A stretch of 64,000 bases of DNA from the NCBI RefSeq assembly GCF_039654945.1, contig NW_027361688.1:16368001-16432000 (forward strand), given 5' to 3'. Positions 1,395 through 41,441 of the stretch are shown piece after piece. Within the stretch, counting starts at the first letter, position 1. Every line of letters starts with the position of its first letter. The notes beneath the pieces are model-generated. The model did not search any database and was not told the origin of the DNA. It was given only the letters and a program-made list of their open reading frames with translations. The position numbers and the translations under genes were made by a program. Origin of the DNA: Dendrobates tinctorius. Its lineage: Eukaryota.

Positions 1395-1800
1395 TGGAAC
1401 TACAAGTCCCAGCGTGGAGGCAGCAGGGTCACGTGACGCACAGAGAGGCTCCGGGTTAGTTTTTTTTTATTGCGTCACAGACTTGATACGTCATTCCCTT
1501 TAACTTGGGAGACATGCTGGGACCTGTAGTTCCACACCTAGCAGCGAGTGACAGCTATAACCCAGGATACGTACAACGGCCGCCATGGCCTCCATCTCCT
1601 GACTCTCTGCCCCTGCAGCTCCCTTCCTTCAGTATGACTTACGTGACATTGCCCGGGCACCGGCCGCCCTGCAGAGGATAATCACCGCCATCTTGACCGC
1701 GGTCCGACAAGTCTGCGCGTGCGCGAACTACGGAAGCCGCGACGAACGCGTTATTAGTGTTTTGACAACAGCGCAACATCGCCATCTAGCGGCCGCAGCG
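1395..1800 (-). promoter_or_regulatory. CpG-rich housekeeping promoter of the putative NDUFA9
   Basis: Two ZNF143/THAP11-type motifs (actacaagtcccagc ~1399; catgctgggacctgtagt ~1513), E-box gtcacgtgac ~1428, YY1 motif (aagatggcgg on -) over the ATG, NRF1-like tgcgcgtgcgc ~1714, ETS cggaag ~1731, CTCF-like gccatctagcggc ~1781. Confidence 0.65.
1643..1691 (-). CDS. NDUFA9: Probable NDUFA9 (complex I subunit) first coding exon; the gene continues off the left edge
   Basis: Minus strand reads caagATGGCGGTG...GCAATGTCAC|gtaagt = MAVIILCRAAGARAMS(R), a 49-nt exon resembling a mitochondrial presequence. As I recall, human NDUFA9 exon 1 is also 49 nt and ends ATG TCA C (MAAAAQSRVVRVLSMS-R). It lies in a CpG-rich promoter, and RAD51AP1, a human neighbour of NDUFA9, is in the same window. 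Only one short exon is visible. Confidence 0.68.
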
Positions 1801-2344
1801 TGCAATGTCAGCGCTCCCGGATTTGTGCCTCTTCCTGTTGTCCGCCATCATTTCTTCCCCCCTAATATCTGATAAATTGCTTCTTCTATAACTTTTGTGG
1901 GGTTTGGTGACATTTTTAATAGTTAAAGCCAAATTCCAAGCAATTTCGCCATCGGTTAATAATATTGGGTTTTATTTTCACTTGTTTCTCCCATTTTCCG
2001 AGATTTTTTTCTTACTTTTTGTTCTTTTTCCGGTGACGGCTTTTTCCTTTATGTGATTTTGTAATTTGCTGCTTATTAAAATTTTCAGCCGTTTTTGAGA
2101 TATTAGCGACTTTCTTTTATTGATACTGCGTTGCCTCGGAGACCGACCGCCGCTGCTACACAGCGGAACGCGCGGAGCACTTACTAGCTCTTCTCTAAGT
2201 GGGTGCACAGCAGCGATCGGAGCGGAGTCGGGTCGCTGCTGTCAGCACCAACTGTATTCTTCTCTTCTCCATAACTTTTTGACTTTTCAGACATTACCAT
2301 ATAACAGCCAGCACCCACCGTGCGGCTCATGATCCTGCGTCTTA

Positions 2345-3240
2345 CAGGAAGAGGAGGTGAGCTGTGACATCACCTATTGTGAATGGTGGATCCTGTGTTG
2401 TCTCCTGTATATAGAGGTGTTATCAGTCATTGTACAGGAGGGGGAGGAGGTGAGCTGTGACATCACCTATTGTGAATGGTGGATCCTGTGTTGTCTCCTG
2501 TATATAGAGGTGTTATCAGTCATTGTACAGGAGGAGGTGAGCTGTGACATCACCTATTGTGAATGGTGGATCCTGTGTTATCTACTGTATATAGAGGTGT
2601 TTTCAGTCATTGTACAGGAGGAGGTGAGCTGTGACATCACCTATTGTGAATGGTGGATCCTGTGTTCTCTACTATATATAGAGGTGTTATCATTCATTGT
2701 ACAGGGGGAGGAGGTGAGATGTGACATCCCCTATTGTGAATCCTGTTATCTCCTGTATATAGAGGTGTTATCAGTCATTGTACAGGGGGAGGAGGTGAGA
2801 TGTGACATCCCCTATTGTGAATCCTGCGTTATCTCCTGTATATAGAGGTGTTATCAGTCATTGTACAGGAGGGGGAGGAGGTGTGCTGTGACATCACCTA
2901 TTGTGAATGGTGGATCCTGTGTTATCTCCTTTATATAGAGGTGTTATCAGTCATTGTACAGGAGGAGAAGGTGAGCTGTGACATCACCTATGGTGAATGG
3001 TGGATCCTGTGTTATCTCCTGTATATAAAGGTGTTATCAGACATTGTACAGGAGGAGGAGGAGAGCTGTGACATTGCCTATTGTGAATGGTGGGTCCTGT
3101 GTTATCTACTGTATATAGAGGTGTTATCAGTCATTGTACAGGAGGAGGAGGTGAGCTGTGATATCCCCTATTTTGAATGGTGGATCCTGTGTTATCTACT
3201 GTATATAGAGGTGTTATCAGTCATTGTACAGGAGGGGGGA
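2345..3240. repeat. ~83-89 bp tandem repeat (~10 copies)
   Basis: Unit gtacaggaggaggtgagctgtgacatcacctattgtgaatggtggatcctgtgttatctactgtatatagaggtgttatcagtcatt. The same family occurs inverted at ~38340-38580. Confidence 0.92.
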
Positions 3241-5355
3241 GGACTATTGAGAAAGGGGTACAGGATAAATATTGTGACATGGAAAAAGGAAACATTGCCA
3301 CATTTTATTAAAAATACATTTAAACAGCCTCTAGGAATGCCGGAGGGATCTGAACTCTGATATTGTTTGCTTGTCAACTGCTTTAAATTGACCAGGACTT
3401 TTTCAAGTTCAATCTGGCAAATTAGAGGCTTCGCAGGCTGAAAAGGAGGAGCGGCGTTTAAATGGGCGTTCATAGGCGGATCGGGAAAACCCTCGGTGGG
3501 GCTTAACATCCCTTGACACCCCCCCCCCCCTTAACACAATTGCCACAGACAATCATGCAGAAAGAGCGGAACCATCGCTGCATTTAAAGATGAACTGTTT
3601 GACCTTTTACAAAGCACCGTGACAATTATGTACAGATTGCGGAGAAAGGAGAAAGCCACTAGAGGGAGCCATTGAGGTCAAACTTCAGACAAAAGCTACA
3701 GAGCAGGAAGTGATGTCAGAGAAGGAGGCGGCCAGAACCAGAAGTCCATGAGGTCTTCAGCCAATAGCTGCAGAGCTTGAAGTGACGCACACAAACCAGT
3801 AGCGGGATGAACCCAATGAATAAGGCATGGCACACGGTTCGATAGTCAAAAATATATATTTTCAGGCTAATATGTAGTCTGCATATAAGAAGAAAATGGA
3901 TCTGACTGTATCACACGTTCGCTGTGAGCCCCGTCAGCGGTGACATTCGGGGTGTACACCCCCATTCGTGCACTGCGGGATGCGCACTACCTGACCGCGA
4001 ATATCTGCAAAAAGCATGATAAACCAGAATGTTGGTCACATGATCGATGACTAAAGATCAGCGAGCCCATCGGGAGAAAAAAAAAAATAAAAATACACAT
4101 CAGCTGAAACTCTGTATAGTATAGATTTAAAGGGTTTGTCACATGGCGTCCACACCCCTATAGAGAAAACGTATTGGCGGAATTATGTCTGGACACCATA
4201 TATATTCAATATAAAAGGCATCCGTATAAAAATAGTCATGCAAAAACTTTCAAGGTGTGAACAATCCCTTAAAGTGGTCAATATCATTTCAAAGTTTTAC
4301 ATAAATCAATAGTACAAGCGAATATAAGAAACGTTGTAATGCGTCTTATCAGAGAAATCCGCTTCTTTTTCTACCTACACGCCTTTATTTTCTCTCTCGC
4401 CGCCTCCTCAACTCATTATCCACTCTGCCAAAATACATGTAGATGGAAACCAAGGACTAATCGGCTCACTGAGGGATCAGGTTACAGCACTTAAACGGGT
4501 CAACGGCAACAAATCGGCGCCGACTGCTGCCGTTAGAGGCAGATGCGGCCTGTGCAACACAGCGGGCATCTGATTGTTAGATCTCTTGCTCAGTGTTTCA
4601 ATATTTTTTTTTTATATATATTATGAAAAAAGGACAGTCTCCTATGAAGCCTGGGCTGTGGCTGGGCTTCACGAGAGTAGCAAGATGGCAGCTATGGGTG
4701 GGTGGTTTAGAAGGAAACCGGCTCTTACGGTGACCCGTCGGCACTCTGTGTCAGGGCTGATGGGTGCTGCGTCAAATATGGATATGTAAATGCTTAAACT
4801 GCAGCGATCAGAGCCAGCTCCGGCTGCTGCTCTTAGTGCTAGGTGCCCACTGTATAACAAAGCCGGCAGCCGCCATGTATGAAGCTGGACACTTCAAAGG
4901 TGTTGTTGCGTCGATAAACACAGATCGGTTAGACCTGTTTTGGTGGCACATGGGGGATTTTTGCAGAAAAGAGAACTGATATAATAAGGGGATTGTCCAA
5001 TACTGGAATAAAATTTTTCTAGGCAGGAATGGTTTAAGAAAATAAAATAAACAGAGACATTCTAAGACGTCAAAAGATCGCTTGGGAGGTCTGCACCAGC
5101 TGTGGAAGCAATGTCTGCTCCCTTCGGAAGGTACCGGGACCGCTGCATTCAATCCCAGTGCTCCTGTCGTTACCTATGATTGGCTGCAGCGGTTCTGCTT
5201 CTGAAGAATCGATAGGACTCCGTTTATTAGTGTAAAACCATTCCGGCTTAAAAAAAGACTTATTCAAGTGTCGGAAAACCCTTTTAATAATCAAAGCCTT
5301 ATAACGATTGTCCACTTTTAATCTGAAGGGTGAGACAGATGTAAACTGTAGTTAA

Positions 5356-5704
5356 AGGGATATTCCCATCTCCAAGATCAAATCCCAATATGTAGTAGGT
5401 GTAATAATAACAAAGCCAAGTAGCTCCAATTAGAAATGCAGTATAGTTCTTCTAATTAGCTATGTCGCTTACCCCATGTGCAGGGCATTGCAGTAGGTAT
5501 CTATGGTTATGCCCACTAGTATAACTGTCGCTGTGTGAGTGGTTGTAACCATGGATACCTAAGCTACTACAATGCCCTGCACATGGGGTAAGGGACATGG
5601 CTAATCAGGATAACTATACTAGATTTCTAATTGGAGGTATTTGCTAATATTATTATTACACCTACTACATATTGGGATAGGATCTTGGAGATGTGAATAC
5701 CCCT
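5356..5704. mobile_element. Palindromic T2/Kolobok-type MITE in the ARMT1 3' region
   Basis: TTAA at 5352-5355 and 5705-5708, AGGG...CCCT termini, arms complementary over ~160 bp. Same family as 18426-20384. Confidence 0.85.
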
Positions 5705-5779
5705 TTAAAGCTCAGTTAACCCTTCGTTAGTAAAGTGCTGCACGCCGCGCTAAAACACACAAAAAAGGAGTCCAACGCT

Positions 5780-8700
5780 TCAAACGACAGGACTGAACTG
5801 GATGACTCCATATTTGCCCGATGTCATCCAGTCCACCTCCGCCGCTGTCAGCTGCTCTCCGACCCCCACTTGCAGCCCGACCTGCACATCGGCCTTCAGG
5901 GTTCTGATGCTGCACAATGGAGCCGGGTGAAAGGATCGGAGCGCCTGAGAGAAGGGCGCGGTGAAGTCCCACTTGCGGTCCCCCGTCAGTTTCCTGTAGT
6001 TTAAGTCTCCTTTAAATAAGACTAAATCGGACTTCTGCAGCTCCGTGTACAAGTCCGGAGCCACTTCCGCCATGGTGCAGAACTCGTGGGGCAGAGTCCA
6101 GAAGAGATGCTGGTGATAGACCCAGCGCCCCTTCTTCAGGTTTTCCTTCCAGCTTTGGCCACACTTTGACATCCACTTGTTGTTGACGGCCGTGCATTGC
6201 TGAACTGTCCAGTCGAAGTCGTGCTTCGTGGTGTCAGAGACGAACCACGGCATGACCTTCCCGTGGAAATGAACCTCCGTGGCCAGGTTCAGTGACAGCA
6301 CGGCGTCCGCCATGACCAAATCCGTGACCAACTCGAAGCCGGCGTTATCCAGGACGATGTCCACTCTGGTTCTCGACTCTGCGTTCCCGTCTCTGTTCTT
6401 CGTCAGGATGCTCCAGAGAGGATCCATATCATCCACCAGGATAAATTCCCGAAAGTCGTCCAGGGATGACAGCACGCTGCTCCTCTGGGAGTTGTCCTGA
6501 CCCCCCGATATAGAGAGGTCGCACTTGTTTCCCCACAGAGACACCTACAAGTGATGGACAGCGAAGTATTACAAGAGGGCGAGTCTCTAATAAGGACAGA
6601 AACGGGGGACCTTCTTCACCACTAATATGCCTGCTTCAAGGGCCCTATGCTAGGCAGCGGTGTCCTCCACTTCAAGAGGTGCATGCTGGGACAAAGGGAG
6701 AGGGGGCAGAGGGCGCAACAGGCCACAAGAGAGGGCAGAGGGCGCAAGAGAGGGCGCGACAGGGCAGAGGGCGCGACAGGGCACAAGAGAGGGCAGAGGG
6801 CGCGACAGGCCGCAAAGAGAGGGCATCACCCACCTGCAGCAGTTTGTAGATCTCACCCCGGATGTCATTGCTACTTAGACTATTCGTCTTCCCTTTAAGC
6901 TCCTGGAGATGAGCGCACAGCGCCACCACTGCTTGCTGGGACTGAAAGAAGCTTTCATTCTTCACATCCCTGAAGACGTCATATTCAGATATCGGGGGGC
7001 TGTGTCAAAAAAACAAATAAATAAGGGTCAGGTCATCATCTTTACAGCAATTGGGGATTTGTGGTCTGTCATGCTGCTCCAAATCCTCTGCATAGACACA
7101 ATGATAAGATTCTGGCGGACTGATGCCACCACTAGGGGGAGCCGGCTGTACAATTTTACATGCTCAGAGCTCCCTCTAGTGGAGACTGCCGGCAGCCAGA
7201 ATTTTATCTGGGCCAGTTCTCACCTCAATAACATGCCTTCCTGAATTCTGCGATACAGATAACACTCCACGTACAGCCAGGGGGATCTGAACCAGCTCGG
7301 CTCTTCGTCGCTGCCCACCAGAGTCTTCTGGTAGTCCAGGTACTGATTCCAGATCTGGGTGTCCGGCTGCTCGTCGGTCAGCGGCAGGATGGGCTTGTCC
7401 GTTTGCAATTCGTTCCGTAGTTTAGAAAAGAAAGACAAAGCCTTTTTCTCTGCCTCTATGCCTTCCTGAAAAAAAGGAGCAGCATCTGAATGGCTGTTCT
7501 ATACCCTCCCCCAGAAAAATCAGCTGATCGCCCCAGCCAGGGGTCAAATTCTGAAAAGGGGGTGTCTCTGATGATCAGAGGAGCCCGGTACAACACGTTG
7601 AGGATGATGCTACTGTGCCATTACCAGAAAGCAATACATTAAAGGGGCTCAAATTACAGTGGCACACTATATGGGGTTGTCCGGTTACACCCAGGCCTGC
7701 ACAACATATGGCCTACCGGAATTCACGGCTTTCAGAACCCCGCCCTGAGGTGTAGCAGCGTGATGAGGTCATCACGCCACTCTGTGACCTCATCATACTG
7801 CTGTTGCTGCCAGTGGAACAGCGCAGAAGAGGCAAGGATGCGGTTATTATGAGGCCACATTATGGGGCAACACAATAATGTTAGGAGGCACAATATGCAA
7901 GATGGGGTAATATTACGGAGGGGAGCCGTGTATGGGGACGTCGCGGAGGGGAGCCGTGTATGGGGTCATCACAGAGAGGAGCCGTGTATGGGGACGTCGC
8001 GGAGGGGAGCCGTGTATGGGGACGTCGCGGAGGGGAGCCGTGTATGGGGACGTCGCGGAGGGGAGCCGTGTATGGGGACGTCGCGGAGGGGAGCCGTGTA
8101 TGGGGACGTCGCGGAGGGGAGCCGTGTATGGGGACGTCGCGGAGGGGAGCCGTGTATGGGGACGTCGCGGAGGGGAGCCGTGTATGGGGACGTCGCGGAG
8201 GGGAGCCGTGTATGGGGACGTCGCGGAGGGGAGCCGTGTATGGGGACGTCGCGGAGAGGAGCTGTGTATGGGGACGTCGCGGAGAGGAGCTGTGTATGGG
8301 GACGTCGCGGAGAGGAGCTGTCACCTCGAATCCTCTACTAAATGTGATTTACGGCGCAGTCACTCACCTCCCCGTGAGCTTCCAAGAACTTATTTTTATT
8401 CCGATGTACAGTGTCTATCACCTTCGTTAGAATCTGCGGCATTCGGTCTTTAACTGTGTAATAAGCAAAAGACCTGAAAAATAAAATAATATACCATGTA
8501 TTAAAAATCGGAGTATTATGTGCATTGACCATTTATTATCCCGACGTGCTGGATAAAGAAGCTCACGCCGGAGGAACCGGCTGGTCCACATTGTAAATGG
8601 AGTGCCCACTGATTTTGGAATTCTATATCTGTGACTGCAGACTTGTGAATCCTCACAGTGCACAGTGTGCGCTGTCAGGATTCCCCGCTATGTGATTTGC

Positions 8701-9297
8701 ATGCTTCCAGCCACATTCTGACTAGACGTGTTCGGCCGTGCACGTCTAGTTGGCATGTGACTGCATATATGCCCCATCACCGGAGAATCTAGACAGCGCA
8801 AACTGTGCACGCTGTGAGGATTCACAAGTCTGCAGTCACAGACATAGAAGCCCAAGCCTGGACAACCCCTTTAATTTTTGCTGTGATGGCCCTGCAGGGA
8901 AATTGAACACTTGACAGGTTCCCCCAGAGCTGATCACTAGTGGTTCCTACAGAACAGAGCCTTGTGATCGTCTCGATTGCAAAGACAAGAGCGCAAAATT
9001 CCCCGACTGTAAGCACATGGCTGTAATTCTTTCTCCTTACAACCAATTAAGGGGTATTTTTATATTTTTACATGGCTGCCAATAATAGTTTAACTGCTCC
9101 TTTAATAAAAAGTTGCAATATTTCTGAAATTGTGGTTACAGGATCAGTCAGATGGGTCGAGGGATTTTGCAATTTCCTCAAAGCTGATGACAGGGAACAA
9201 CGTGCCCCGACACACCACGGATTGTGCAAGTTGTACACAGGATCGCTGAGGACACACACCCTTCAAATTTGGCGGAGAGCGAGCAGGGAGTCTCCAT
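5780..9297 (-). CDS. ARMT1: ARMT1 / DCPH1 (DUF89 damage-control phosphatase), 438 aa
   Basis: Coding exons (-): 9297-9260 (METPCSLSAKFEG), 8473-8368 (SFAYYTVKDRMPQILTKVID), 7465-7224 (KLRNELQTDKP..WLYVECYLYRRI), 6999-6834, 6544-5780 (SLWGNKCDLS, VLDNAGFELVTD, KGDLNYRKL, RTLKAD). All introns are GT-AG with consistent phase; total 1317 nt. Confidence 0.96.
6695..6825. repeat. Short purine-rich tandem repeat in the last ARMT1 intron
   Basis: Repeated agagggcagagggcgc(g/a)acagg blocks. Confidence 0.7.
7916..8322. repeat. 28-bp CpG-rich minisatellite (~14 copies) in an ARMT1 intron
   Basis: Unit cggaggggagccgtgtatggggacgtcg, nearly homogeneous, ending ~45 bp from the donor at 8367. Confidence 0.95.
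8630..8873. mobile_element. Palindromic MITE remnant (T2-like right end); second copy at ~25615-25914
   Basis: gtgactgcagacttgtgaatcctcacag ... ctgtgaggattcacaagtctgcagtcac inverted pair, ending ggacaacccctTTAA. Confidence 0.7.
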
Positions 9298-9734
9298 CTT
9301 GTTGGTTTACTGGGCGTGTCGTCTGGGCGAGAAGAAACATGAAGTTACCAGAACGTTTGTGAGGTTGTGATCTGGAAGAGAAACTTTACATTACTACATG
9401 CACAACACGAGAAGGAAAAATGGTGGAATTCTGGAAGTCACAGGATGGAGACGTTACTGATCTACACGTGACGGAAAAGTGGAAACATTTCCAAAATATC
9501 TCGATTTATTCAGGTTGCAGGATTAGCCTCTGTGCAGAAATCCACACACCCCTCGGCATGTCTCCATCCTGTGAGGACTGTGTGTATATATCTAGGGGAG
9601 ATCATATATACTGTGAGCACAACCATACACAGCCCCATAAGCGGTGCCAATCCCCCGCGCACAGTGCTCGTCAGAGTATCCCTACACCTTGTGCTAAACT
9701 GGGGATTTGTATACACTGCCAGAGAATGGGCTCA

Positions 9735-12460
9735 TATACAGTCCTGCCGCAGACTGCCCCTATACACAGCCCGGCCACAGTGCCCCCGTACACAGCCCAG
9801 CCACAGAGCCCCCCCATACAGTCCTGCCGCAGAGTGCCCTCATACACAGCCCGGCCACAGTGTCCCCCCCATACACAGCTCGGCCATAGAGCCCCCCGCA
9901 TACAGACTTGCCGCAGAGTGCCCCTATACACAGCCCAGCCACAGAGCCCCCCCCCATACAGTCCAGCCGCAGAGTGCCCCCATACACAGTCCGGCCACAG
10001 TGCCCCCCCCGCATTCAGTCCTGCCGCAGAGTGCTCTCATACACAGGCCAGCCACAGAGTGCCCCCATACAGTCCAGCCACAGAGTGCCCCCATACAGTC
10101 CAGCCACAGAGTGCCCCCATACACAGTCCAGCCACAGAGCCCCCACATACAGTCCTGCCGCAGAGTGCTCTCATACACAGTCCAGCCGCAGAGTGCCCCC
10201 ATACACAGTCCGGCCACAGATTCCCCCCCCCCCTCCCACATACAGTCCTGCCGCAGAGTGCACCCATACACAGTCCGGCCACAGATCCCCCCCCCCGCAT
10301 ACAGTTCTGCCGCAGAGTGCCCCCATACACAGTCCGGCCACAGATCCCCCCCCCCACATACAGTCCTGCCGCAGAGTGCACCCATACACAGTCCGGCCAC
10401 AGTGCCCCCCCCCCCCCCCGCATTCAGTCCTGCCGCAGAGTTGCCCCATACACAGTCCTGCCGCAGAGTGCCCCCATACACAGTCCGGCCACAGATCCCC
10501 CCCCCCACATACAGTCCTGCCGCTGAGTGACCCCCATACACAGTCCAGCCGCAGAGTGCCCCCATACACAGTCCTTACACACAGAGCCCCCCCGCATACA
10601 GTCCTGCCGCAGAGTGCCCCCATACACAGTCCTTACACACAGAGCCCCCCGCATACAGTCCTGCCGCAGAGTGCCCCCATACAGTCCTTACACACAGTGC
10701 CCCCCGCATACAGTCCTGCCGCAGAGTGCCCCCTTACACACAGTCCTGACACACAGCGCCCCCATACACACAGTCCTGACACAGAGTGCCCCCATACACA
10801 CAGTCCTGACACACAGCGCCCCCATACACACAGTCCTGACACAGAGCGCCCCCATACACACAGTCCTGACACAGAGCGCCCCCATACACACAGTCCTGCC
10901 GCAGAGCGCCCCCATACACACAGTCCTGACGCAGAGCGCCCCCATACACAGTCCTGACGCAGAGCGCCCCCATACACAGTCCTGACGCAGAGCGCCCCCA
11001 TACACACAGTCCTGACACAGAGCGCCCCCATACACACAGTGCTGACACAGAGCGCCCCCATACACACAGTGCTGACACAGAGCGCCCCCATACACACAGT
11101 CCTGACACAGAGCGCCCCCATACACACAGTCCTGACACACAGCGCCCCCATACACACAGTCCTGACACACAGCGCCCCCATACACACAGTCCTGACACAG
11201 AGCGCCCCCATACACACAGTCCTGACACACAGCGCCCCCATACACACAGTCCTGACACACAGCGCCCCCATACACACAGTCCTGACACACAGCGCCCCCA
11301 TACACACAGTCCTGACACAGAGCGCCCCCATACACAGTCCTGACACACAGCGCCCCCATACACACAGTCCTGACACAGAGCGCCCCCATACACACAGTCC
11401 TGACACAGAGTGCCCCCATACACACAGTCCTGACACAGAGTGCCCCCATACACACAGTCCTGACACAGAGTGCCCCCATACACACAGTCCTGACACAGAG
11501 TGCCCCCATACACACAGTCCTGACACACAGCGCCCCCATACACACAGTCCTGACACAGAGTGCCCCCATACACACAGTCCTGACACAGAGTGCCCCCATA
11601 CACACAGTCCTGACACAGAGCGCCCCCATACACACAGTCCTGACACAGAGCGCCCCCATACACACAGTGCTGACACAGAGCGCCCCCATACACACAGTGC
11701 TGACACAGAGTGCCCCCATACACACAGTCCTGACACAGAGCGCCCCCATACACACAGTCCTGACACAGAGCGCCCCCATACACACAGTCCTGACACAGAG
11801 CGCCCCCATACACACAGTCCTGACACAGAGCGCCCCCATACACACAGTCCTGACACAGAGTGCCCCCATACACACAGTCCTGACACAGAGTGCCCCCATA
11901 CACACAGTCCTGACACAGAGTGCCCCCATACACACAGTCCTGACACAGAGTGCCCCCATACACACAGTCCTGACACAGAGTGCCCCCATACACACAGTCC
12001 TGACACACAGCGCCCCCATACACACAGTCCTGACACACAGCGCCCCCATACACACAGTCCTGACACAGAGTGCCCCCATACACACAGTCCTGACACACAG
12101 CGCCCCCATACACACAGTCCTGACACACAGCGCCCCCATACACACAGTCCTGACACAGAGCGCCCCCATACACACAGTGCTGACACAGAGTGCCCCCATA
12201 CACACAGTCCTGACACACAGCGCCCCCATACACACAGTCCTGACACAGAGCGCCCCCATACACACAGTCCTGACACAGAGCGCCCCCATACACACAGTCC
12301 TGACACAGAGTGCCCCCATACACACAGTCCTGACACAGAGTGCCCCCATACACACAGTCCTGACACAGAGTGCCCCCATACACACAGTCCTGACACACAG
12401 CGCCCCCATACACACAGTCCTGACACAGAGTGCCCCCATACACACAGTGCCCCCACATAC
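9735..12460. repeat. 28-30 bp minisatellite, ~2.7 kb, between the ARMT1 start codon and the shared promoter
   Basis: Unit cagtcctgacacagagcgcccccatacaca; degenerate on the left, homogeneous 30-mer from ~10740. Confidence 0.97.
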
Positions 12461-12529
12461 AGTGCAGTGCACTGCAGGCTTCCACACACACGGGCACACG
12501 GATAACGCCCCCAGTGTACACAGTAGAAG

Positions 12530-12990
12530 TGAGGCGCCGCCATACATATCCCTCCGCGGGCTCAGACTCCTCTCTCCTCCGGCTCAGCAGACACTACAGC
12601 AGCTGCAGGTGCCGGCGCTCAGACCTAGCCTCCTCTCCTCTCCCGCACATTCGCGGATCTCACTGCTGTCATGTTTACACCTCTCCGGACCCTCAAAAAA
12701 TATAGAGCAAAATAAAATTGTATTCAATCACTTTCCTTTATAAAATTTGAAGTGAAGGTTGTACTCAGTATCTGCAGTCATCGAATCTGCCTCTGCCAAT
12801 AACAAGACTCGACAACTAGAGGGAGGCAGCCATAGCCAACAGGAGTGAACGCTGAGGGCGGGGCTTTATGTCAGTCAGTGGGCGGGGTCTCCCTCGTGCA
12901 GGTAAGTGCTGCGTCTCGGGCGGTGAAGGTCGCAGGTTCGATCCCTTGCTGCGCGGCATTAGGGGCGCGATCCTTTACCTCTGCCCTTAC
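12530..12990. promoter_or_regulatory. Putative bidirectional ARMT1/RMND1 promoter with RMND1 non-coding exon 1 (donor CAG|gtaagt at 12901/12902)
   Basis: GC/CpG-rich patch, GC boxes gggcgggg at ~12857 and ~12880, strong + strand donor. The head-to-head arrangement is also known in human. Confidence 0.65.
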
Positions 12991-13529
12991 AGCCTGCAAA
13001 TGAAGAAGATAAAGAATTTATGGTGGAATTTCATTGGTCTTGAGCCCATAGGAGCGCACGGTCATTTAACCGTGAAATTATTAACCGAGATGACACCCCC
13101 TCGAAGAGTTAAAAATGTGGGTTTTTTAAGCTCTTTTCTTCCATGCAATTTTTTTTTAGGGACCTCCAATGAGTTACTGTCCTCTATTAACCCTAAACAC
13201 TGAGAATAAGCCACGGAAACCACCGTAACATGTCAGGTATGCCCATATTCCCCCCCGGAGAAGGGGTCCTGTCATAGACCGACGTGTATAATAATCTATG
13301 TAAGCACCTAAACCATCGTATTTTGGAATATTCTGCAACGTTTTGGGACCTGGGACGATGGAGGGATGGCAAAAAGCAAATGACATCACTGTCGGATCCG
13401 ACATCAATGTCGCCGGAGTGATGCCCTGGGCAATTGCCCACTTTTCCTCCCCCTAACGCCAGCCCTGGTGTCTCACCTTGTTAAAGTGAGAAAAAAATTG
13501 CAAAGAGTTTGTAAAACTGAGAAATTCAC

Positions 13530-14056: not shown

Positions 14057-26840
<12,784 letters not shown>

Positions 26841-30532: not shown

Positions 30533-30693
30533 GGGAAGAGTCATATAAATCGAGACCGGATTCAGTGCCAGGACCGGCCGGCAGCTCGAAGACCCGAGCG
30601 TCACAGCTTGATGTATTTCTATGCAGTGGGTCCGAAAGCCGCCGGACAGTCCAGGCACTGGGTTCCGATTTTTATGGCCCCCTGACTCTTCCC
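30533..30693. mobile_element. Small Harbinger-like MITE nested in a T2-type MITE end
   Basis: TIR gggaagagtca / tgactcttccc with TWA flanks; it interrupts the gacctatcc..ggataggtca motif seen intact at ~36120. Confidence 0.6.
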
Positions 30694-31439
30694 TAAGGAT
30701 AGGCCAGCAATGTAAAAGGCCCAGACATCTCCTTTAAGACTTTATCAGGGTCTCCCCCTTGCGAAGGAAATGGAATCTGTGGGTCCGCATTGCATCAAGT
30801 AGGAGGCTAATTAACCATATACGACCTATACCGGTATTTATAAGTATCTACGTCTATTGTTGGCTGTAGACTGAGTTAACTGAGGATCCGTCAGTGAGCT
30901 CGGTCTGATGGTCTGACAGGAGAGTTTATGAGAACTCTTTTATCTGTCTTTTTCTGATTTATGACTACAAATCACATTAAGTTTGATTTCCTAGGATAAT
31001 AAAAAGCCAAACGTTGCAACATTTTTTATTGAAACCCAATAATAAAAATTAGTTTGGGGCCATGGGCCATTACTTTGCTGAAATTCTACCGGTAGCCGGT
31101 AGGTGTCTCACTCCTTGTTGCAAGCTTTGGCCACATCAGCACACAAAACTATCAGACCTCTCTAGACAGGTGAGAGTCTATGGTAAGGTCATGTGGTAAG
31201 GTCATGTGATCAGCTCCATCGGTTACCAAGGATACGAGAATAAGCGGAAAAACTTAGAAGCATCTGTATCACGTGATCACCCAGCGTAAGTTCCTTCCGG
31301 GCACATTCGTCATTATACCTCTTTCATGGACAAGTCGGTGTTTTTAATTAATATTTGCGTTGTTTACTTACCGTGACTGACTTATCGGGCTCCAAATTGT
31401 AGTGTAAAGATTAAGTAAGAGGAAGATATGTTTTTTAAT

Positions 31440-31640
31440 AGCATTTTGTGACGAATGTGCGAGCGGGAATGGTCAGAAGCGAAATTTGCGCGGGATGTTT
31501 GAGCTCATTCGGGGGCTGGGACGGACAGTGTGAGACAGAGAGAGGGTGTGCGGGGCGCCGGGGGCGGCCAGAGCCGGGGATGAGCGCTCATAGAGGGGGC
31601 TACTAAGAAGAAAGCTGCCTGCTATCCAGCTCCGCACAAT
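31440..31640 (+). promoter_or_regulatory. RAD51AP1 promoter / 5' UTR
   Basis: CpG-rich, with E2F-like gcgggaa and tttgcgcggg immediately upstream of the ATG exon. Confidence 0.55.
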
Positions 31641-34600
31641 GGACAGGCCGGCCAGGTGAGCGATTAACCCCTCCAGGTAGCTTTTTTTTTTTAACTGTTT
31701 CCTAATTGGTTACATTTTATATTTTGATTTTTCCCAGAGGCAGCGACATCAAATATAAGTTTTTTTTCCCCTATAATGTTGTTTTATGCCCCCCATGATC
31801 ATCTGATCACTTCTACCCCATACTGTAATGTGTCAGTACTGCCGCAGGCAGGAGCCACTAAATGCGGTCAGTGATTGGCCGCCGCGTGCGCCCTGCGGTC
31901 AGTGATTGGCAGCCGCGTACGCCCTGCGGTCAGTGATTGGCAGCCGCGTACGCCCTGCGGTCAGTGATTGGCAGCCGCGTACGCCCTGCGGTCAGTGATT
32001 GGCAGCCGTGTACGCCCTGCGGTCAGTGATTGGCAGCCGCGTACGCCCTGCGGTCAGTGATTGGCAGCCGCGTGCGCCCTGCGGTCAGTGATTGGCAGCC
32101 GCGTACGCCCTGCGGTCAGTGATTGGCCGCCGAGTACGCCCTGCGGTCAGTGATTGGCCGCCGTGTACGCCCTGCGGTCAGTGATTGGCTGCCGCGTACG
32201 CGCCGCGGTCAGTGATTGGCAGCCGCGTACGCCCTGCGGTCAGTGATTGGCCGCCGCGTGCGCCCTGCGGTCAGTGATTGGCCGCCGCGTACGCCCTGCG
32301 GTCAGTGATTGGCAGCCGCGTACGCCCTGCGGTCAGTGATTGGCCGCCGTGTACGCCCTGCGGTCAGTGATTGGCCGCCGCGTACGCGCCGCGGTCAGTG
32401 ATTGGCAGCCGCGTACGCCCTGCGGTCAGTGATTGGCAGCCACGTACGCGCCGCGGTCAGTAATTGGCAGCCACGTACGCGCCGCGGTCAGTGATTGGCA
32501 GCCGCGTGCGCCCTGTGGTCAGTGACTGGCAGCCGCGTGCGCCCTGTGGTCAGTGACTGGCAGCCGCGTGCGCCCTGCGGTCAGTGACTGGCAGCCGCGC
32601 CGCGGTCAGTGATTGGCAGCCGCGTACGCCCTGCGGTCATTTATTGGCAGCCGCGTGCGCCCTGCGGTCAGTGATTGGCAGCCGTGTGCGCCCTGCGGTC
32701 AGTGATTGGGGTTATTTAGTTCCGGTTGTTGCCGCCAGAAGCAAAGATATACATCATGGAGCACGAAGGGGTTAATGCAGAGTCGGCTGGTATGTCTGCT
32801 ATTTGTAGTCCCCTTTTCCTGCCTCCAGTCACCTCCATGTTGATGTCGGGCCACTATAGACACCAGGTGTAAGGCCACTCTTGTGCTGGTGACGGGTTCT
32901 CTGGTCTTACTCTATCATGTCATTAACTCTGAGCCTGAATGATATTTTTCAGGAATAAAAAATCAGTGGATTATTCCCAGTTTTTGGACCTGGAAGATGA
33001 CGGTAAGTGAAAAATAGAACGTAATGTTTGTGATTTGCCATATTGGGGTCGGTCCTCACGGGTCAGCTCGCTTGTAGCTGCCTTTTGAGATAATCTGCTA
33101 ATAAAGCGTACCTGTAGTTTCAGGTAAACTGTTCAGTATAAGCGTTCCTACGTGTGCATGAAGATGATGTTTCTGGCCATTACAGACTCTGAATCCTGCA
33201 TTTTTCAACGATTTTCCGCTCTGCAGGCTTTCTCATAATATTCATATTGTCTCTGAGCTGGTGGAGTGAGACCAGCTGCTATGATCTCTCCCATACACAG
33301 CACACACAGATATGTGCGATTCCAGCTCTCCTGTCTATTGTTGCACATGTTCAGCATCAACAGAAGAACGAAGGACATTATACAGCAGTTCCGAGCAGTG
33401 TAGATGTGAATCCAGCTCTGGGTTGAGATAAACACTAGAAAGCGGCAGTACTGTCTTTGTGTCTATCTCTCCTCTATAGACTTGATAAGCAGGTGTAATC
33501 TGATCCCTCAGTCTTTCTGTGAATAAGAAGGATTTGATCTGTTTTTTTTTTCTTCTGAAGTAGATGATGATTTCAATGAGAGGGAAAGAAGCGGCTTATA
33601 AGTGGAGAAAGAAGCTGATTTGTCTGATCAGATGTATTACAAAGTTTCTCCTATTCGCTATTCCTATTAATTTACGTAACATTTTGTTGAAATGTCACCA
33701 ACCATATTTATATATTTTTCTATTTTCCATACACTCTCTCTCTTTTTTTTTTTCGTAGACGAGGATTTCGCTTCATCGGCACCTGTAAGTAAGAAAGCGC
33801 GTGTAGAGACGAAGAAGGAGAAAAAAGATAAACCAATAAAGAAAAATAATAAAGAAGAGACCATAGCGACGAATTCCCAGAAAAAGAGGTGAGTGAGGTG
33901 CACATGTCACAAAATGGGATATTGTGTCCCCTGAGCAGACCCCCAAGGATCGGACCCCTGTTGTTTATTGTGACCACAGCTTGGAGTGATGCTAGTGCAC
34001 GCGGGGGAGAACAGATACTGAAGTGACTGCAACTCGCTGGACAGCAGATTATTGTTTGGGCAGCTGTATCACCCAGGGTGCACTAGCTCCTCAACATGGG
34101 AAGAAGAGTATTGCTGCACTGCCCCTTTAGTTTGACAACCACTTCTCCAATATACTTCAATTATTTATCTTTTATACTTTCCATGACTTTTCATTTGAGA
34201 ATCCCCAGTGCATGCTGGTATACTCGAACGAGACGTCATCAGGGGACCAGGGCTTCAATCACTGCTGCAGCTGCTATGCCTAACCCGAAACAAAGCGTCA
34301 TCAGTGACGTCCCTTTCAGGGACTGCTTAATTAAGCATCTGCCGATTGTCAATTCCAACGCATCATCAGTATGTATCTTTGAATGCATAGTGACAGTACG
34401 TTCCCTCGCTGTCTCTAAAGTGAAGTGACGAGCCAACGAGAGAGCGCACTGTCAATGCAAATTGTAAACGAAAGAATACGGCAATGCGGGAGATCAGAGA
34501 CCAGTCCCTGAAATAGAGGTCACTGATGATGCTTTGTTTCAGGGTGGGGAAAGCAGCTGAGGCAGTGATCGAAGCCACGGCCCCCCGATCACGTCCTTTT

Positions 34601-37600
34601 TGAGCAACCCAGCATGCACTGGAGATTCTCAAGCAAAAAGTCATTTGATGTTACAGTAGAGAGGGAACAGTGCATAATTTCTAATTGAAGTATATTGGAG
34701 AAGTGATTACAGTATTGAATTAAATGAAAAGGCATTTAGTCTGAAATTCACCTTTTGGTTTCAGGCCTCCCCTTTAAGGCGGTACAATGAGGTTAGCACT
34801 GTGCAGATTACAACGATTTGTCACATTTCGGGTATAGTCAGGTTTCCAGTTTCATCGGTGCCTTTTTTTTCGCCTTTTACCCAGGCTGCCTCTAGAAGAC
34901 AAGCTGTATCAGCGAGATTTAGAAGTGGCTTTGGCGCTGTCGGCGAAGGAGACGTCCGTCATTATAGAGAATGATGAGAATATTCCCAGAAATGGTATAT
35001 ATTTGTTATTATCGATTCATGTTCGGGGCCTGCAAGAAAGTATTGAAGAAAACTCCTCATTAAAGGGTTTGACCGGTGAAAATAAACAGCACTTAATGAT
35101 CGGTGGAGGTCTGACCCCTGGGATCTGTACTGATCTACATCACCGGGGAGGGCACTTTTATACCTGTGGTGGAGCCCATGCTTTTCCTGCAGCCCAGGTC
35201 GGACCCCCACCGGTCAGCAAGTGATCACCTATACTGCTGACAGTTTATAATTGATTGCGTAGTGAGCGCACCGTGACACACGGCTCCTTGAAGGCGATCA
35301 CGCTGGCACTACTGTTGCGCCCATACGATCGCCAGCAGGATGATGGGAGTGATCACCGCCTCGATCCGGACAGTTAACCCCCTCCCCCCGCACCGCCTTT
35401 GTTTGGCCTTTCACTTACTTTGTGCATTGTGAATCTCGCTGTCTTATCCAGAAGCTCCAGAAGACGCCTGTAGGTTTATTAAAGATCCTGACGTGTGCGA
35501 AGCATCCTTCTCAAATTGCAGCGTTGACAGCAGCACACTAGGTAATTGATGTTTTTTGGAGGGGGGCTTTAAACATTGAATCCTACTAGTCTCTGGAAAA
35601 AAAAACTTTTAATTTTATCTTAAACACTTTCTGCTTTATTTTTTTTATATTTTTCCTGATGTCAGCTGATGTCCATCTATTGAATCCCGGGCTGATGGTG
35701 GAGATTTACTTTCTGTTTTTTTTTCCCCACAGGTCTGGACGAGATCACAGACGAAAATGAAGACCCCAGTAGAGGCAGAAGTCGCAGACAAGCTGCTTGT
35801 AAAGCCATTACTGAGCAGAGGAAACTCCTGACGGAAGAAAGCGGGGATGAAGAGGATGCCGAGGAGTTTAAGCCAGACACAATGGCGGGTATGTACACAG
35901 TAGGAGTAATAGGGAAATCATCCTGTCCTGACATGTTCATGTTCACACCTGCAGATGACAGGACTATATAATGCGCAGTGGGGCTGCACAGGATGCAAAG
36001 TAGTTAGATGACCGCTACTTGTATAGTCTGGGAGTACAGGCATCATTATTATATAAGAATCTGACGCCCACCCTCCCATCATCTGACTTAAAGGGGTTCT
36101 CTAGGTTTCTTTATGTTGATGGTCTATCCTTAGGATAGGTCATCAGCCTCAGATTGGTGAAGGTCTGACATCTGCACCACCACCGATCAGCTGCCACAGG
36201 ATGTACGGTGCCGGTACACCAAAGCTCCATAAGCTACGCTGTGGCAGTTTTCAGGAACTGCAGCTCAGCTTAATTGGGGTGTGAGACCTGAGGTGTTGGG
36301 ACCTGGTGACAGCTGATCCTCGGGGTGCGGGATCTGGTGACGACTGATCCTTGGGGTGTGGGATCTGGTAACAGCTAATCCTTGGGGTGCGGGATCTGGT
36401 GACTGCTGATCCTTGGGGTGCGGGATCTGGTGACTGCTGATCCTTGGGGTGCGGGATCTGGTGACTGCTGATCCTTGGGGTGTGGGATCTGGTGACGGCT
36501 GATCCTTGGGGTGTGGGATCTGGTAACAGCTAATCCTTGGGGTGTGGGATCTTGTGACGGCTGATCCTTGGGGTGTGGGATCTGATAACAGCTAATCCTT
36601 GGGGTGCGGGATCTGGTGGCGACTGATCCTTGGGGTGCGGGATCTGGTGGCGACTGATCCTTGGGGTGCGGGATCTGGTGGCGACTGATCCTTGGGGTGC
36701 GGGATCTGGTGGCGACTGATCCTTGGGGTGCGGGATCTGGTGGCGACTGATCCTTGGGGTGCGGGATCTGGTGACGACTGATCCTTGGGGTGCGGGATCT
36801 GGTGACGACTGATACTTGGGGTGTGGGATCTGGTAATGGCTGATCCTTGGGGTGTGGGACCTGGTAATGCAGGGTTCCCCAAATCCGGTCCTCAAGGCCC
36901 ACCAACAGGTCATGTTTTCAGGATTTCCCCTGTATTGTACGGGTGATGCAATTATCACCTGGGCAATACTAAGGAAATCCTGAAAACATGACCTGTTGGT
37001 GGGCCTTGAGGACTGGAGTTGGGGAACCCTGCGGTAATGGCTGATCCTTGGGGTGCGGGATCTGGTGACAGCTGATCCTTGGGGTGTGGGACCTGGTAAC
37101 AGCTGATCCTTGAGATGTTGAGCTCCCACTGATCTAATACCGATGACCTGTCCACAGCTCAGGCAACCAATATCAAATTCTCAATTTTTTTTCTAATTTG
37201 ATTTCTTGTATTTTTTACCAACAGGGATTTATTCATTTTTAACCGAATATCTTCTATGTGTCACAGTACACAGCAGAATGAGTTACAGGTGGATCTGTCA
37301 GAGAGCTGCGACTATTATCTTCTGACCTGGTAAAAGGGGATCTTTGATGAAACCATAATTTTCGGCCTTAGAGACCCTGACTGACTCACTGGTAACTCTG
37401 CTGTCCTCTGAGTACTATGAAACATAGAGGATATAGAAGCCAAACGGTTCACCATTTTTAGGGTATGTGCACACGCTGCGGATTCTGCTGTGGATCCGCA
37501 GCGGATTGGCCTCTGCGGATCCACTGCAGAACCGATAGCAATATACAGTACAATATTATCCAATGGGTTTTAGAAATCGCAGTGCACATGCTGCGGATTT

Positions 37601-40600
37601 TTCTGCGGTTTTAAATCCGCAGCATGTCAATTCTTTGTGTGGATTCCGCAGCGGTTTGACACCTCTTCCATTGTCCAGGTCTCAAACCGCAGGGGAAAAC
37701 CGCTGGTAAATCCGCAGTGGAATCCACACTGTGTGTACTCACCCTTAATGACACACTATTGCAAAAAATGCTTTTTAGCCCCCCCCCCCTAAAAGAAACA
37801 CCTGCATCCAATTAAACAAGAAGCTTCAGCTAAACCCGTCCACCCGCCTTCTCTTTTATGCAGTCGGGGACTCTGAGAGCGACGTGAGTTTTAGCGACGA
37901 AGAGGAAGAATTTGAAGTTAAAAAGTCTAAGAAAGCGTCAACCACAAAAGTCACTAAGCAAAAGGCAAACAGCGGAAAAAAGGAGAAGACTGTGACAAAG
38001 GCACCGAAAGCGGGTGAGGAGCGGAGAGCGCCCCGGTCTGCATCATGGGAGCCGTCAGAGCTATACAACAGTATAGTAACAGTCTAAGGGTCCGGCGGGG
38101 AGGGCTGCACTCTGCCTGGCATCCGACTGAATTGGACATAATAGGAAGCGCCCTGAGTCTGTCGCTCTCAGCCCTCAATTTGCTGAAAGGAACTGACAAG
38201 GTTTCGCTCCTCAGTCATTCACTCACTTGTCCTTATTTGATTCTAAGGCAGTCACAGTTTGTATACCATACAAAATGAGTATTTTGGTAAATGCGTGTGT
38301 GTATTCTAGTATGTAGTCTCAATGTCACCACAGGCAGGATTATAACACCTCTATATACAGTAGATAACACAGGATCCACCATTCACAATAGGTGATGTCA
38401 CAGCTCACCTCCTCCCCCTCCTGTACCATGCCTGATAACACAGGATCCATCATTCGCAATAGGTGATGTCACAGCTCACCTCCTCCTGTACAATGACTGA
38501 TAACACCTCTATACACATTAGATTATTCATGATCCACCGTTCCCCATACCATAAGTGATGTCACAGCTCACCTCCTCTGTATAGATGAACACCTTGCCCA
38601 TAGAGCACAGACCTCTCCTAAAGGGGAATATAGCCAGTTCGGCTGCCGGTAATCAGTAATATGGCTCCTATAAACTCTGCTTTTCCTGTTGCAGATGACA
38701 ATCTTGAATTATTTTACCTTTTATGCCACAGTGACTGTGAAAATAAAACCGATGCCAGCAGAGAAGCCCCCCGCCAGTGCACCTGCTACTTTTAAGTCGG
38801 CGTTACCCTGTAGTCCTCCGGTGGGCGTGAAGAGACCGGCATGGACGCCTCCAGGTAAGCTCCGACAGCCATGCCAGGTATGTCCAGTGGCTCCACCATC
38901 GCAGATCCTCCTTCCATCTCTGCTTTCACCATCTTGATAATAAGCATTCGGCGGCAGAAGACTCCTGATCACGTCCTGTTTTCCATTTTTCGTTTTTTTC
39001 CTCGCAGAGCCATAACTTTTTTATTTTTCCTCCAATATTGGCCATGTGAGGGCTTGTTTTTTGCGGGTCCAACATGTAGTTTTGAACGACACCATTGATT
39101 TTACCATATCGTGTACCAGAAAACTGTTTAATAGTCCCCTTAGCGGACTTGAAGCTGCGATCATCCGATCGCCTGTGCTATACATACACTGCATCAGCCC
39201 TACTATGTATAGCAGAAATCACGATCTTCTATGAACGCCGGCCACAAGCCAGCGTTCATAGGAAGATCGTGATGGCCGGCACGGGAGTCTTCAGCAGACC
39301 CTCTGCTGTCATGGCAGCCCATCAGCGCCTGCAGTCACTTGATGGGTGGGATGAATGACGCATTTCCTGTCTGCGTGTGCTAAATGCTGCACTCACCATA
39401 TATTTTACATGCTCTTTGTTTCCTGGCACATTCAACTTTGATGTGGTCTGTAGTCCTAAATTAGCAGAGAAGAGCTGAGAAAAAGACAGATAAAAGAGTT
39501 ACAGCCTCTAGTCACAGTGTAAGAATGAGCTCACTGCTGGATCCTCAGTTAGCTCATTCTGCAGCCAGCAACATAGAGATTATGGAAGGCAAACAGTGCA
39601 ACATTTTTTTAATGAAACCCAATTACAAAAATGATTTTTAGCACCAATAAAAACACAGTGGGGCAAAAAAGTATTTAGTCAGTCAGCAATAGTGCAAGTT
39701 CCACCACTTAAAAAGATGAGAGGCGTCTGTAATTTACATCATAGGTAGACCTCAACTATGGGAGACAAACTGAGAAAAAAAAATCCAGAAAATCACATTG
39801 TCTGTTTTTTTTTCATTTTATTTGCATATTATGGTGGAAAATAAGTATTTGGTCAGAAGCAAAATTTCATCTCAATACTTTGTGATATATCCTTTGTTGG
39901 CAATGACAGAGGTCAAACGTTTTCTGTAAGTCTTCACAAGGTTGCCACACACTGTCGTTGGTATGTTGGCCCATTCCTCCATGCAGATCTCCTCTAGAGC
40001 AGTGATGTTTTTGGCTTTTCGCTTGGCAACACGGACTTTCAACTCCCTCCAAAGGTTTTCTATAGGGTTGAGATCTGGAGACTGGCTAGGACACTCCAGG
40101 ACCTTGAAATGCTTCTTACGAAGCCACTCCTTCGTTGCCCTGGCGGTGTGCTTTGGATCATTGTCATGTTGAAAGACCCAGCCACGTTTCATCTTCAATG
40201 CCCTTGCTGATGGAAGGAGGTTTTCACTCAAAATCTCACGATACATGGCCCCATTCATTCTTTCATGTACCCGGATCAGTCGTCCTGGCCCCTTTGCAGA
40301 GAAACAGCCCCAAAGCATGATGTTTCCACCACCATGCTTTACAGTAGGTATGGTGTTTGATGGATGCAACTCAGTATTCTTTTTCCTCCAAACACGACAA
40401 GTTGTGTTTCTACCAAACAGTTCCAGTTTGGTTTCATCAGACCATATGACATTCTCCCAAAACTCCTCTGGATCATCCAAATGCTCTCTAGCAAACTTCA
40501 GACGGGCCCGGACATGTACAGGCTTAAGCAGTGGGACACGTCTGGCACTGCAGGATCTGAGTCCATGGTGGCGTAGTGTGTTACTTATGGTAGGCCTTGT

Positions 40601-41441
40601 TACATTGGTCCCAGCTCTCTGCAGTTCATTCACTAGGTCCCCCCCGCGTGGTTCTGGGATTTTTGCTCACCGTTCTTGTGATCATTCTGACCCCACGGGG
40701 TGGGATTTTGCGTGGAGCACCAGATCGAGGGAGATTATCAGTGGTCTTGTATGTCTTCCATTTTCTAATTATTGCTCCCACAGTTGATTTCTTCACTCCA
40801 AGCTGGTTGGCTATTGCAGATTCAGTCTTCCCAGCCTGGTGCAGGGCTACAATTTTGTTTCTGGTGTCCTTTGACAGCTCTTTGGTCTTCACCATAGTGG
40901 AGTTTGGAGTCAGACTGTTTGAGGGTGTGCACAGGTGTCTTTTTATACTGATAACAAGTTTAAACAGGTGTCATTACTACAGGTAATGAGTGGAGGAAAG
41001 AGGAGACTCTTAAAGAAGTAGTTACAGGTCTGTGAGAGCCAGAAATCTTGATTGCTTGTTTCTGACCAAATACTTATTTTCCACCATAATATGCAAATAA
41101 AATGAAATAAAAAACAGACAATGTGATTTTCTGGATTTTTTTTTCTCAGTTTGTCTCCCATAGTTGAGGTCTACCTATGATGTAAATTACAGACACCTCT
41201 CATCTTTTTAAGTGGTGGAACTTGCACTATTGCTGACTGACTAAATACTTTTTTGCCCCACTGTATGTAAAAAAAAAATTGTGGATATCCTTTAAACTTG
41301 TTTCTCTCCGCAGCTTCCTCTGGAGCAGCGCGGAGTCCGCTGGCTGGGGTAACCGTGAAGTCTCCTAATCAGGGTCTGCGTCTCGGCCTGTCAAGACTGG
41401 CGAGGGTGAAACCATTACATCCAACGACTGTCCTGCACTGA
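31639..41441 (+). CDS. RAD51AP1: RAD51AP1 (RAD51-associated protein 1), 317 aa
   Basis: Exons: 31639-31655 (MDRPAR), 32953-33002 ([10 protein letters not shown]), 33759-33888, 34885-34994 ([17 protein letters not shown]), 35452-35541 (SNCSV), 35733-35888 (LDEIT..RQAACKA..QRKLL), 37864-38013, 38732-38854 (KRPAWTPP), 41314-41441 ([23 protein letters not shown], the RAD51-binding motif). Introns are GT-AG with consistent phase; total 954 nt. Confidence 0.95.
31863..32710. repeat. 31-bp CpG-rich minisatellite (~27 copies) in RAD51AP1 intron 1, most units with a CCAAT box
   Basis: Unit gcggtcagtgattggcagccgcgtacgccct; the reverse strand reads gccaatcac. Confidence 0.96.
34135..34755. mobile_element. 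Older palindromic MITE
   Basis: cacttctccaatatacttcaatta / taattgaagtatattggagaagtg and gaaacaaagcgtcatcagtgac / gtcactgatgatgctttgtttc inverted pairs. Confidence 0.65.
36275..37112. repeat. 31-bp minisatellite interrupted by a hAT MITE
   Basis: Unit ctgatccttggggtgcgggatctggtggcga. Confidence 0.92.
36870..37031. mobile_element. 162-bp palindromic hAT-type MITE
   Basis: CAGGGTTCCCCAA..TTGGGGAACCCTG termini, ~58-bp inverted arms, 8-bp TSD tggtaatg / cggtaatg. Confidence 0.85.
37461..37744. mobile_element. PIF/Harbinger-type MITE related to 16733-17060
   Basis: TTA flanks, gggtatgtgcacacg..gtgtgtactcaccc, tgcggat-rich interior. Confidence 0.72.
38340..38582. repeat. ~3 inverted copies of the 83-89 bp repeat seen at 2345-3240
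   Basis: ggatccaccattcacaataggtgatgtcacagctcacctcctc. Confidence 0.85.
39656..41263 (-). mobile_element. Second full-length Tc1 copy, 1608 bp, in the last RAD51AP1 intron
   Basis: Same TIRs and near-identical sequence to 18592-20201. Left flank CA, right flank TA. Confidence 0.97.
39872..40895 (-). pseudogene. Tc1 transposase with a single +1 frameshift
   Basis: The ORF is split into 40626-40895 and 39872-40633. The C run at 40639-40645 has 7 C versus 6 in copy 1. Confidence 0.88.

Follow-up and report, generated by a model that had tools for sequence, protein, structure and literature searches.

Human RMND1 and ARMT1 are divergent, intron-containing neighbors at 6q25.1, in the order ZBTB2-RMND1/ARMT1-CCDC170-ESR1-SYNE1. 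NDUFA9 and RAD51AP1 belong to a different human block, at 12p13.32, where the order is C12orf4/RAD51AP1 (head-to-head)-DYRK4-AKAP3-NDUFA9 and NDUFA9 and RAD51AP1 lie on the same strand. In the frog Dendrobates tinctorius, a stretch of 64,000 nucleotides (NW_027361688.1, positions 16,368,001-16,432,000, forward strand; hereafter the window, in which all coordinates are given) brings genes of both blocks together in the order NDUFA9(-), ARMT1(-), RMND1(+), RAD51AP1(+). How did the ARMT1-RMND1 pair come to stand between NDUFA9 and RAD51AP1, and is this arrangement peculiar to the genome in which it was noticed? A reading made from the sequence alone had treated it as an event of this genome. We consider it probable, at about 0.8, that the order in the window is instead the normal one, fixed in frogs, and that it results from an old rearrangement that separated the pair from its ZBTB2 and SYNE1/ESR1 neighbors.

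The four genes in the window were identified by reading it in six frames and by targeted searches, in which exons were queried singly (Pfam, PDB, and tblastn) and not as joined spliced proteins; the boundaries of RMND1 exons are approximate unless they were read directly in the sequence. Gene orders for comparison were taken from annotated assemblies of other species, with a flank of at most 10 kb in each. The window holds no runs of N, and tandem arrays are abundant in it.

Both junctions of the pair in other frogs

The genes and the intervals that join them are as follows.

1691..1643, minus strand: first coding exon of NDUFA9, 49 nt, 16 codons (ATG 1691-1689; donor gtaagt at 1642-1637, reading gtaagtca)
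1450..1900, no strand: CpG-rich NDUFA9 promoter region, CpG observed/expected 1.0-1.2, GC 0.55, conserved with the 5' end of Engystomops NDUFA9
1750..3500, no strand: left junction interval, from the NDUFA9 promoter to the end of the ARMT1 transcript, mostly a tandem array of 90 bp x 10
2343-3235, no strand: that 90-bp tandem array, 10 copies, from tandem repeat finding
3520..9297, minus strand: ARMT1, five coding exons (9297-9260, 8481-8368, 7467-7224, 6999-6831, and 6541-5783; stop 5782-5780)
14057..26840, plus strand: RMND1, 11 coding exons (ATG 14057, MSWLLRK...; stop 26838-26840)
26841..31638, no strand: right junction interval, from the RMND1 stop to the RAD51AP1 start, holding a 42-bp tandem array
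27535-28624, no strand: that 42-bp tandem array, from tandem repeat finding
31639..41441, plus strand: RAD51AP1 (ATG 31639; stop 41439-41441)

Three annotated frog loci can be set beside this arrangement.

Engystomops pustulosus (CM082086.1), hyloid frog: RMND1 (453 aa, DUF155) and ARMT1 divergent, then NDUFA9 2 kb downstream
Xenopus laevis (CM004470.1), pipid frog: RMND1 and ARMT1 divergent, then NDUFA9
Discoglossus pictus (CM050167.1), alytid frog: ARMT1 and RMND1 divergent, then a 316-aa RAD51_interact gene 6.7 kb downstream

These loci agree with the window in genes, order, strands, and approximate spacing and differ from it only in intron sizes, tandem arrays, and transposon insertions. 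The NDUFA9 junction recurs in independent assemblies of two other species and the RAD51AP1 junction in that of one; in X. tropicalis and Hymenochirus, the locus tags of ARMT1 and RMND1 are adjacent as well. Since both junctions are common to distant frog families, they must be old, and they represent neither a misassembly nor an event specific to this species. Such sharing accords with the very slow pace at which gene order is reported to change in frogs (PMC10794172; 10.1101/2024.10.27.620512).

The junction with NDUFA9 depends on a single short exon. This 49-nt exon and its donor are identical to exon 1 of an annotated Engystomops gene encoding a 377-aa protein (Epimerase/NAD_binding_10), which lies 2 kb downstream of ARMT1, and exon 2 of that gene matches mammalian complex I NDUFA9 chains in PDB (E 3.6e-19). 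A clearly homologous exon of the same gene stands in the same place in X. laevis, and exon 1 together with its promoter shares ~75-82% DNA identity with both frogs. The exon thus belongs to NDUFA9, as first proposed, and not to another gene. With frog NDUFA9 exon 2 as the tblastn query, and in the six-frame reading, we found no match to exon 2 in the window, so that the remainder of the gene must lie beyond the left window edge.

At the other end, RAD51AP1 was recognized from the following exons.

31639-31655, plus strand: exon 1, MDRPAR, ATGGACAGGCCGGCCAG followed by a gt donor, matching the start of the annotated Discoglossus gene
~32950-33007, plus strand: exon 2, KKSVDYSQF, matching the same Discoglossus gene
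~33.77, 34.9, 35.75, 37.9, and 38.75 kb, plus strand: further exons
~41313-41438, plus strand: last exon, PF15696

The last exon carries the RAD51-interacting motif PF15696 (E 1.4e-19, profile positions 1-38 of 39) and matches residues 313-351 of the RAD51AP1 chain 9qn8_B in PDB (E 3.2e-11); an internal exon matches residues 89-123 of the same chain, so that the order of the two matches is kept. RAD51AP2, a protein of ~1100 aa, has the same RAD51-interacting motif. In the window the motif is C-terminal and the protein is small and encoded by many exons, which identifies RAD51AP1 and not RAD51AP2. The Discoglossus gene at the matching place encodes 316 aa and has exons 1 and 2 in common with the window gene. 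A second, degraded copy of a Tc1 transposon occupies ~39.65-41.1 kb in the last RAD51AP1 intron, its open reading frame (ORF) cut to 253 aa; the first copy, described below, lies in an RMND1 intron, and the two represent one transposon type.

Neither junction interval yielded a trace of how it was formed. The left one shows no conservation with the other frogs compared; its extent, ~1.75-3.5 kb, is set by the ARMT1 3' untranslated region (UTR), which extends to ~3.5-3.85 kb, and the transcript contigs that define this UTR narrow the ~1.8-5 kb first given for the left breakpoint. When the spacer between RMND1 and RAD51AP1 was compared with its Discoglossus counterpart by tblastx, no conserved coding sequence was found, and the sole match was RAD51AP1 exon 2. 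Neither eel ZBTB2b nor exon 1 of caecilian C12orf4 gave a tblastn match in the window, at either junction, and no other coding remnants were found in the two intervals.

An assembly artefact, with chimeric joins made within tandem arrays, is a further candidate: both junctions contain such an array (2343-3235 and 27535-28624), contigs of the DNA run break at a high-copy repeat at 5390-5680, and the best DNA run, which probably derives from the sample used for the assembly, gives no independent support. This explanation is effectively refuted by the NDUFA9 junction in two other frogs and the RAD51AP1 junction in one, all of other families and independently assembled, and by the conservation of the NDUFA9 promoter and exon 1 at the matching place.

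With the identities, order, and strands of all four genes borne out by domain, PDB, and frog orthologue matches, the window presents an ordinary synteny break, the usual state in frogs, which is already visible in public annotations and for which we found no describing paper. Our literature search returned no paper joining RMND1, ARMT1, and synteny, nor one on Xenopus ESR1 synteny with RMND1. The relocated “rebel” genes described in frogs (10.1101/2024.10.27.620512; PMC10794172) are likewise small gene units outside their ancestral vertebrate neighborhoods, but those studies compare frogs with frogs, and the ARMT1-RMND1 move predates the sampled frog lineages and is therefore invisible there; one of them (10.1101/2024.10.27.620512) mentions none of NDUFA9, ARMT1, RMND1, and RAD51AP1.

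Neighbors outside frogs and the direction of change

Loci from two teleosts, a bird, and a caecilian bear on which of the two arrangements came first.

Anguilla rostrata, eel: ARMT1 and RMND1 divergent, then a BTB zinc-finger gene of 512 aa, with relatives that carry the name zbtb2b
Aplochiton taeniatus, teleost: ARMT1, then a convergent 5898-aa SYNE1 gene
Apus apus, bird: ARMT1 and RMND1 divergent, with no other gene within 10 kb
Rhinatrema bivittatum, caecilian (L002:1-10000): Fy-3/C12orf4 (566 aa, PF10154) head-to-head with ARMT1, 1.6 kb apart

The teleosts keep neighbors like those of human, ZBTB2b in the eel and SYNE1 in Aplochiton, and the locus tags of RMND1 and ZBTB2 are adjacent in Gymnothorax and Aldrovandia. 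These loci, together with the human order, imply that the 6q25-type neighborhood is ancestral for bony vertebrates and that the frog order is derived, in agreement with the proposal that the pair had left an ESR1 block. In human, C6orf96, C6orf97, and C6orf211 sit immediately upstream of ESR1 (PMC3084198). The replacement of both usual flanks was also seen correctly, as NDUFA9 and RAD51AP1 now flank the pair and neither is a 6q25 gene. The bird ARMT1-domain model upstream of RMND1 (L006:1-6945) is 1131 aa long and may be a read-through or fusion with the next gene. In Pleurodeles, the RMND1 gene spans 190 kb, and no gene is called beside it.

The opposite polarity, with the frog order ancestral for vertebrates and the human and teleost order derived, is highly improbable. 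The fish loci compared are all from teleosts, and ARMT1 of the caecilian also adjoins a gene of the 12p13 block, both of which leave some room for it. However, the pair or ARMT1 stands by 6q25-block genes in the eel, in two further elopomorphs (by locus tags), in Aplochiton, and in human (PMC3084198), and the same derived join would have to have arisen twice, in ray-finned fishes and in amniotes. The frog order was not found to be ancestral in any outgroup examined.

Retention of introns by both ARMT1 and RMND1, as first stated, shows that neither is a retrocopy. The human 6q25.1 block holds the same orthologous pair, divergent and intron-containing, and differs in that frogs lack the 6q25 flanks and that in the window the 5' ends lie 4.76 kb apart with no compact promoter. 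In human 12p13.32, RAD51AP1 and NDUFA9 lie close together, as they do in frogs, and another gene of that block, C12orf4, is involved in the caecilian; in frogs, unlike human, NDUFA9 and RAD51AP1 diverge around ARMT1 and RMND1, and C12orf4 is not head-to-head with RAD51AP1.

The history that we favor would begin with one or more events that parted the pair from ZBTB2 and SYNE1/ESR1, its neighbors to this day in teleosts and human, and that took place before the alytid, pipid, and hyloid lineages diverged. From then on, divergent ARMT1 and RMND1, with their introns kept, would have remained between NDUFA9 and RAD51AP1 in the sampled frogs, ARMT1 running tail-to-head into NDUFA9 and RMND1 tail-to-head into RAD51AP1. 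We infer that it was the pair that relocated, in a single unit, and that the host block underwent at least one extra inversion, which is needed because NDUFA9 and RAD51AP1 point apart here and lie on the same strand in human.

The caecilian complicates this history. Fy-3 is C12orf4 (10.1101/2021.06.21.449265), and the call in Rhinatrema comes from a precomputed PF10154 match of the full product, the first coding exon having no Pfam or PDB match. The call also draws on the N-terminus of human C12orf4. No RMND1 exon was found within 10 kb of Rhinatrema ARMT1, and the pair is seemingly split or rearranged there. In the wider gene-order comparison proposed at the outset, Xenopus shows the NDUFA9 junction, and Rhinatrema differs, with C12orf4 beside ARMT1. 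The original scheme of one transplant and one inversion gives way to an older history with more steps. Three genes of the 12p13 block adjoin the pair in amphibians, which suggests that the pair entered the block once, early, and that frogs and caecilians then rearranged it in different ways, and the move into the 12p13-type block may predate the frog-caecilian split. That ARMT1, with RMND1, entered the C12orf4-RAD51AP1-NDUFA9 block just once, in the stem of the living amphibians, with frogs and caecilians reshuffling it differently afterward, is a tentative proposal to which we give somewhat less than even odds.

Alternatively, the pair may have stayed in place while separate rearrangements joined NDUFA9, RAD51AP1, and, in caecilians, C12orf4 to it, and ZBTB2 and CCDC170/ESR1/SYNE1 were carried off. 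Flanks of 10 kb do not tell host from insert, and the divergence of NDUFA9 and RAD51AP1, unlike the same-strand order in human, calls for more than one event in any case. We nevertheless regard this course as unlikely, because it needs at least two independent joins from one distant block to both sides of a small pair, and the presence of three different 12p13-block genes and no 6q25 gene beside the pair in amphibians is simpler if the pair entered the block.

Several observations weigh against an old rearrangement that moved the pair into its present frog neighborhood. The junction intervals, which contain tandem arrays and lineage-specific sequence, yielded no breakpoint signature. The flanks seen in each species stop short of the chromosome-scale host block. 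One insertion by itself would not produce the caecilian arrangement, in which C12orf4 adjoins ARMT1 and RMND1 is absent from the surrounding 10 kb. Finally, the teleost outgroups went through an additional genome duplication, and in Aplochiton the 10 kb around ARMT1 show no RMND1.

ARMT1, RMND1, and the surrounding sequence

The 254-aa stop-to-stop piece at 5783-6544, which contains the last ARMT1 exon, matches the ARMT1-like domain PF01937 (E 1.3e-67), and exons 2 to 4 give weaker, collinear matches to profile positions 1-99. Exon 1 was read directly as ATG GAG ACT CCC ... GAA GG followed by gtgtgt, at 9297-9260 (9297-9259 by tblastn). In a protein word search the best relatives, from Engystomops pustulosus and a transcript-derived protein, are 87% identical, followed by Dendropsophus (85%) and Hyla sarda (84%); each frog species has one ARMT1 entry among the best 120 protein matches, an indirect hint that the gene was moved and not duplicated. 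Orthology and domain coverage thus both support ARMT1.

Several studies provide sequencing runs of this organism that cover 3240-7900. In three small runs from three studies (X5, X9, and X11), contigs join 6541 to 6831, and in two of these (X5 and X9) they also join 6999 to 7224. Each of the two omitted pieces is bounded by CT..AC on the plus strand, equivalent to GT..AG on the minus strand, and the contigs extend past 7467 into the reverse complement of exon 2. With such ends and this continuation, the contigs are spliced ARMT1 transcripts and confirm exons 3 to 5, the kind of run being only guessed on record. UTR contigs of similar depth run from 5411 down to ~3840 (X9 and X11) or ~3520 (X5), which gives ARMT1 a 3' UTR of ~2 kb. 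Contigs of the DNA run tile 3240-7900 except at one high-copy repeat.

~5390-5735, no strand: very high-copy repeat inside the ARMT1 3' UTR, where contigs of all runs break

The summed contig depth over this repeat is ~61,700 in the DNA run, compared with ~4 alongside.

The exons of RMND1 were located by tblastn with frog RMND1 proteins.

~14057-14455, 17126-17236, 17712-17798, 21746-21800, 22009-22110, and 22173-22292, plus strand: exons 1-6
22992-23066, ~23150-23221, 24411-24539, 25371-~25490, and 26805-26837, plus strand: exons 7-11

All 11 are collinear with annotated RMND1 of Phyllobates, Bufo, Hyla, and Engystomops, which establishes orthology. The closest RMND1 by tblastn is that of the dendrobatid Phyllobates terribilis, and several frogs have an RMND1 that is 100% identical over exon 9 (24411-24539). 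The window exons match the DUF155 genes annotated beside ARMT1 in Engystomops and X. laevis; searched directly with single RMND1 exons, which are too short for the purpose, Pfam DUF155 (PF02582) reached a best E of 0.063. An RMND1 intron holds a Tc1-type transposon at 18592-20201 with an intact 340-aa ORF (18811-19833, minus strand) containing the domains HTH_SB, HTH_Tnp_Tc3_2, and DDE_3.

Two features lie in the spacer between the pair.

9733..12455, no strand: minisatellite of 30-bp (and 28-bp) units, ~85 copies over 2.7 kb, found with TRF between the 5' ends of ARMT1 and RMND1
12536..13115, no strand: conserved, CpG-enriched non-coding block, 68% identical over 624 bp to Engystomops L001:7688-8290, CpG observed/expected 0.72-0.85

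The pair had been credited with a shared promoter that moved with it. The start codons of ARMT1 (9297) and RMND1 (14057) are 4.76 kb apart, with the 2.7-kb minisatellite in between. In other frogs the separation is 2.9 kb (Engystomops), 6.5 kb (Discoglossus), or 6.6 kb (X. laevis), and in the eel it is 1.0 kb. Judged on start codons, the divergent 5' ends do not fall within the ~1 kb expected of a bidirectional promoter. By sequence, then, ARMT1 and RMND1 have no compact bidirectional promoter, and they may still share an upstream region of non-coding exons. The block at 12536-13115 is a candidate promoter or enhancer of one or both genes. A shorter array homologous to the minisatellite occupies the matching place in Engystomops (L001:9482-9894), so the array must be old and have expanded in the lineage of the window.

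To the right of RAD51AP1, no further gene was found in 22 kb, and no DYRK4 or AKAP3 exon is present there. A retroelement at ~43700-47000 (plus strand) has a LAP2alpha-like ORF at 44214-44924 (E 2.9e-14) followed by reverse transcriptase at 45400-46017 (E 8.9e-20), a layout that we take to resemble that of DIRS-type elements. The last 13 kb (50111-63406) consist of three adjoining satellite arrays.

50111-54843: satellite with an 86-bp unit
55545-57840: satellite with a 43-bp unit
58148-63406: satellite with a 36-bp AT/GGGAG unit

The pair outside the ESR1 neighborhood

For the annotation of this genome the locus is routine, four housekeeping genes in their usual frog order, and its significance lies in the history of the pair. 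In human breast tumors, ESR1 is co-expressed with its neighbors ARMT1 (C6orf211), RMND1 (C6orf96), and CCDC170 (C6orf97) (PMC3084198). In frogs the pair was parted from ESR1 long ago and may have been uncoupled from ESR1 co-regulation, as first proposed, so that frogs could test whether this co-expression has a positional basis; on the tentative reading of a single entry in the amphibian stem, they would constitute a natural experiment in which ARMT1 and RMND1 have been outside the ESR1 regulatory neighborhood for ~300 million years. The junctions could also serve as markers for dating rearrangements of amphibian genomes, and if the pair did enter its new block once, in the amphibian stem, that entry would be a rare genomic change marking Lissamphibia.

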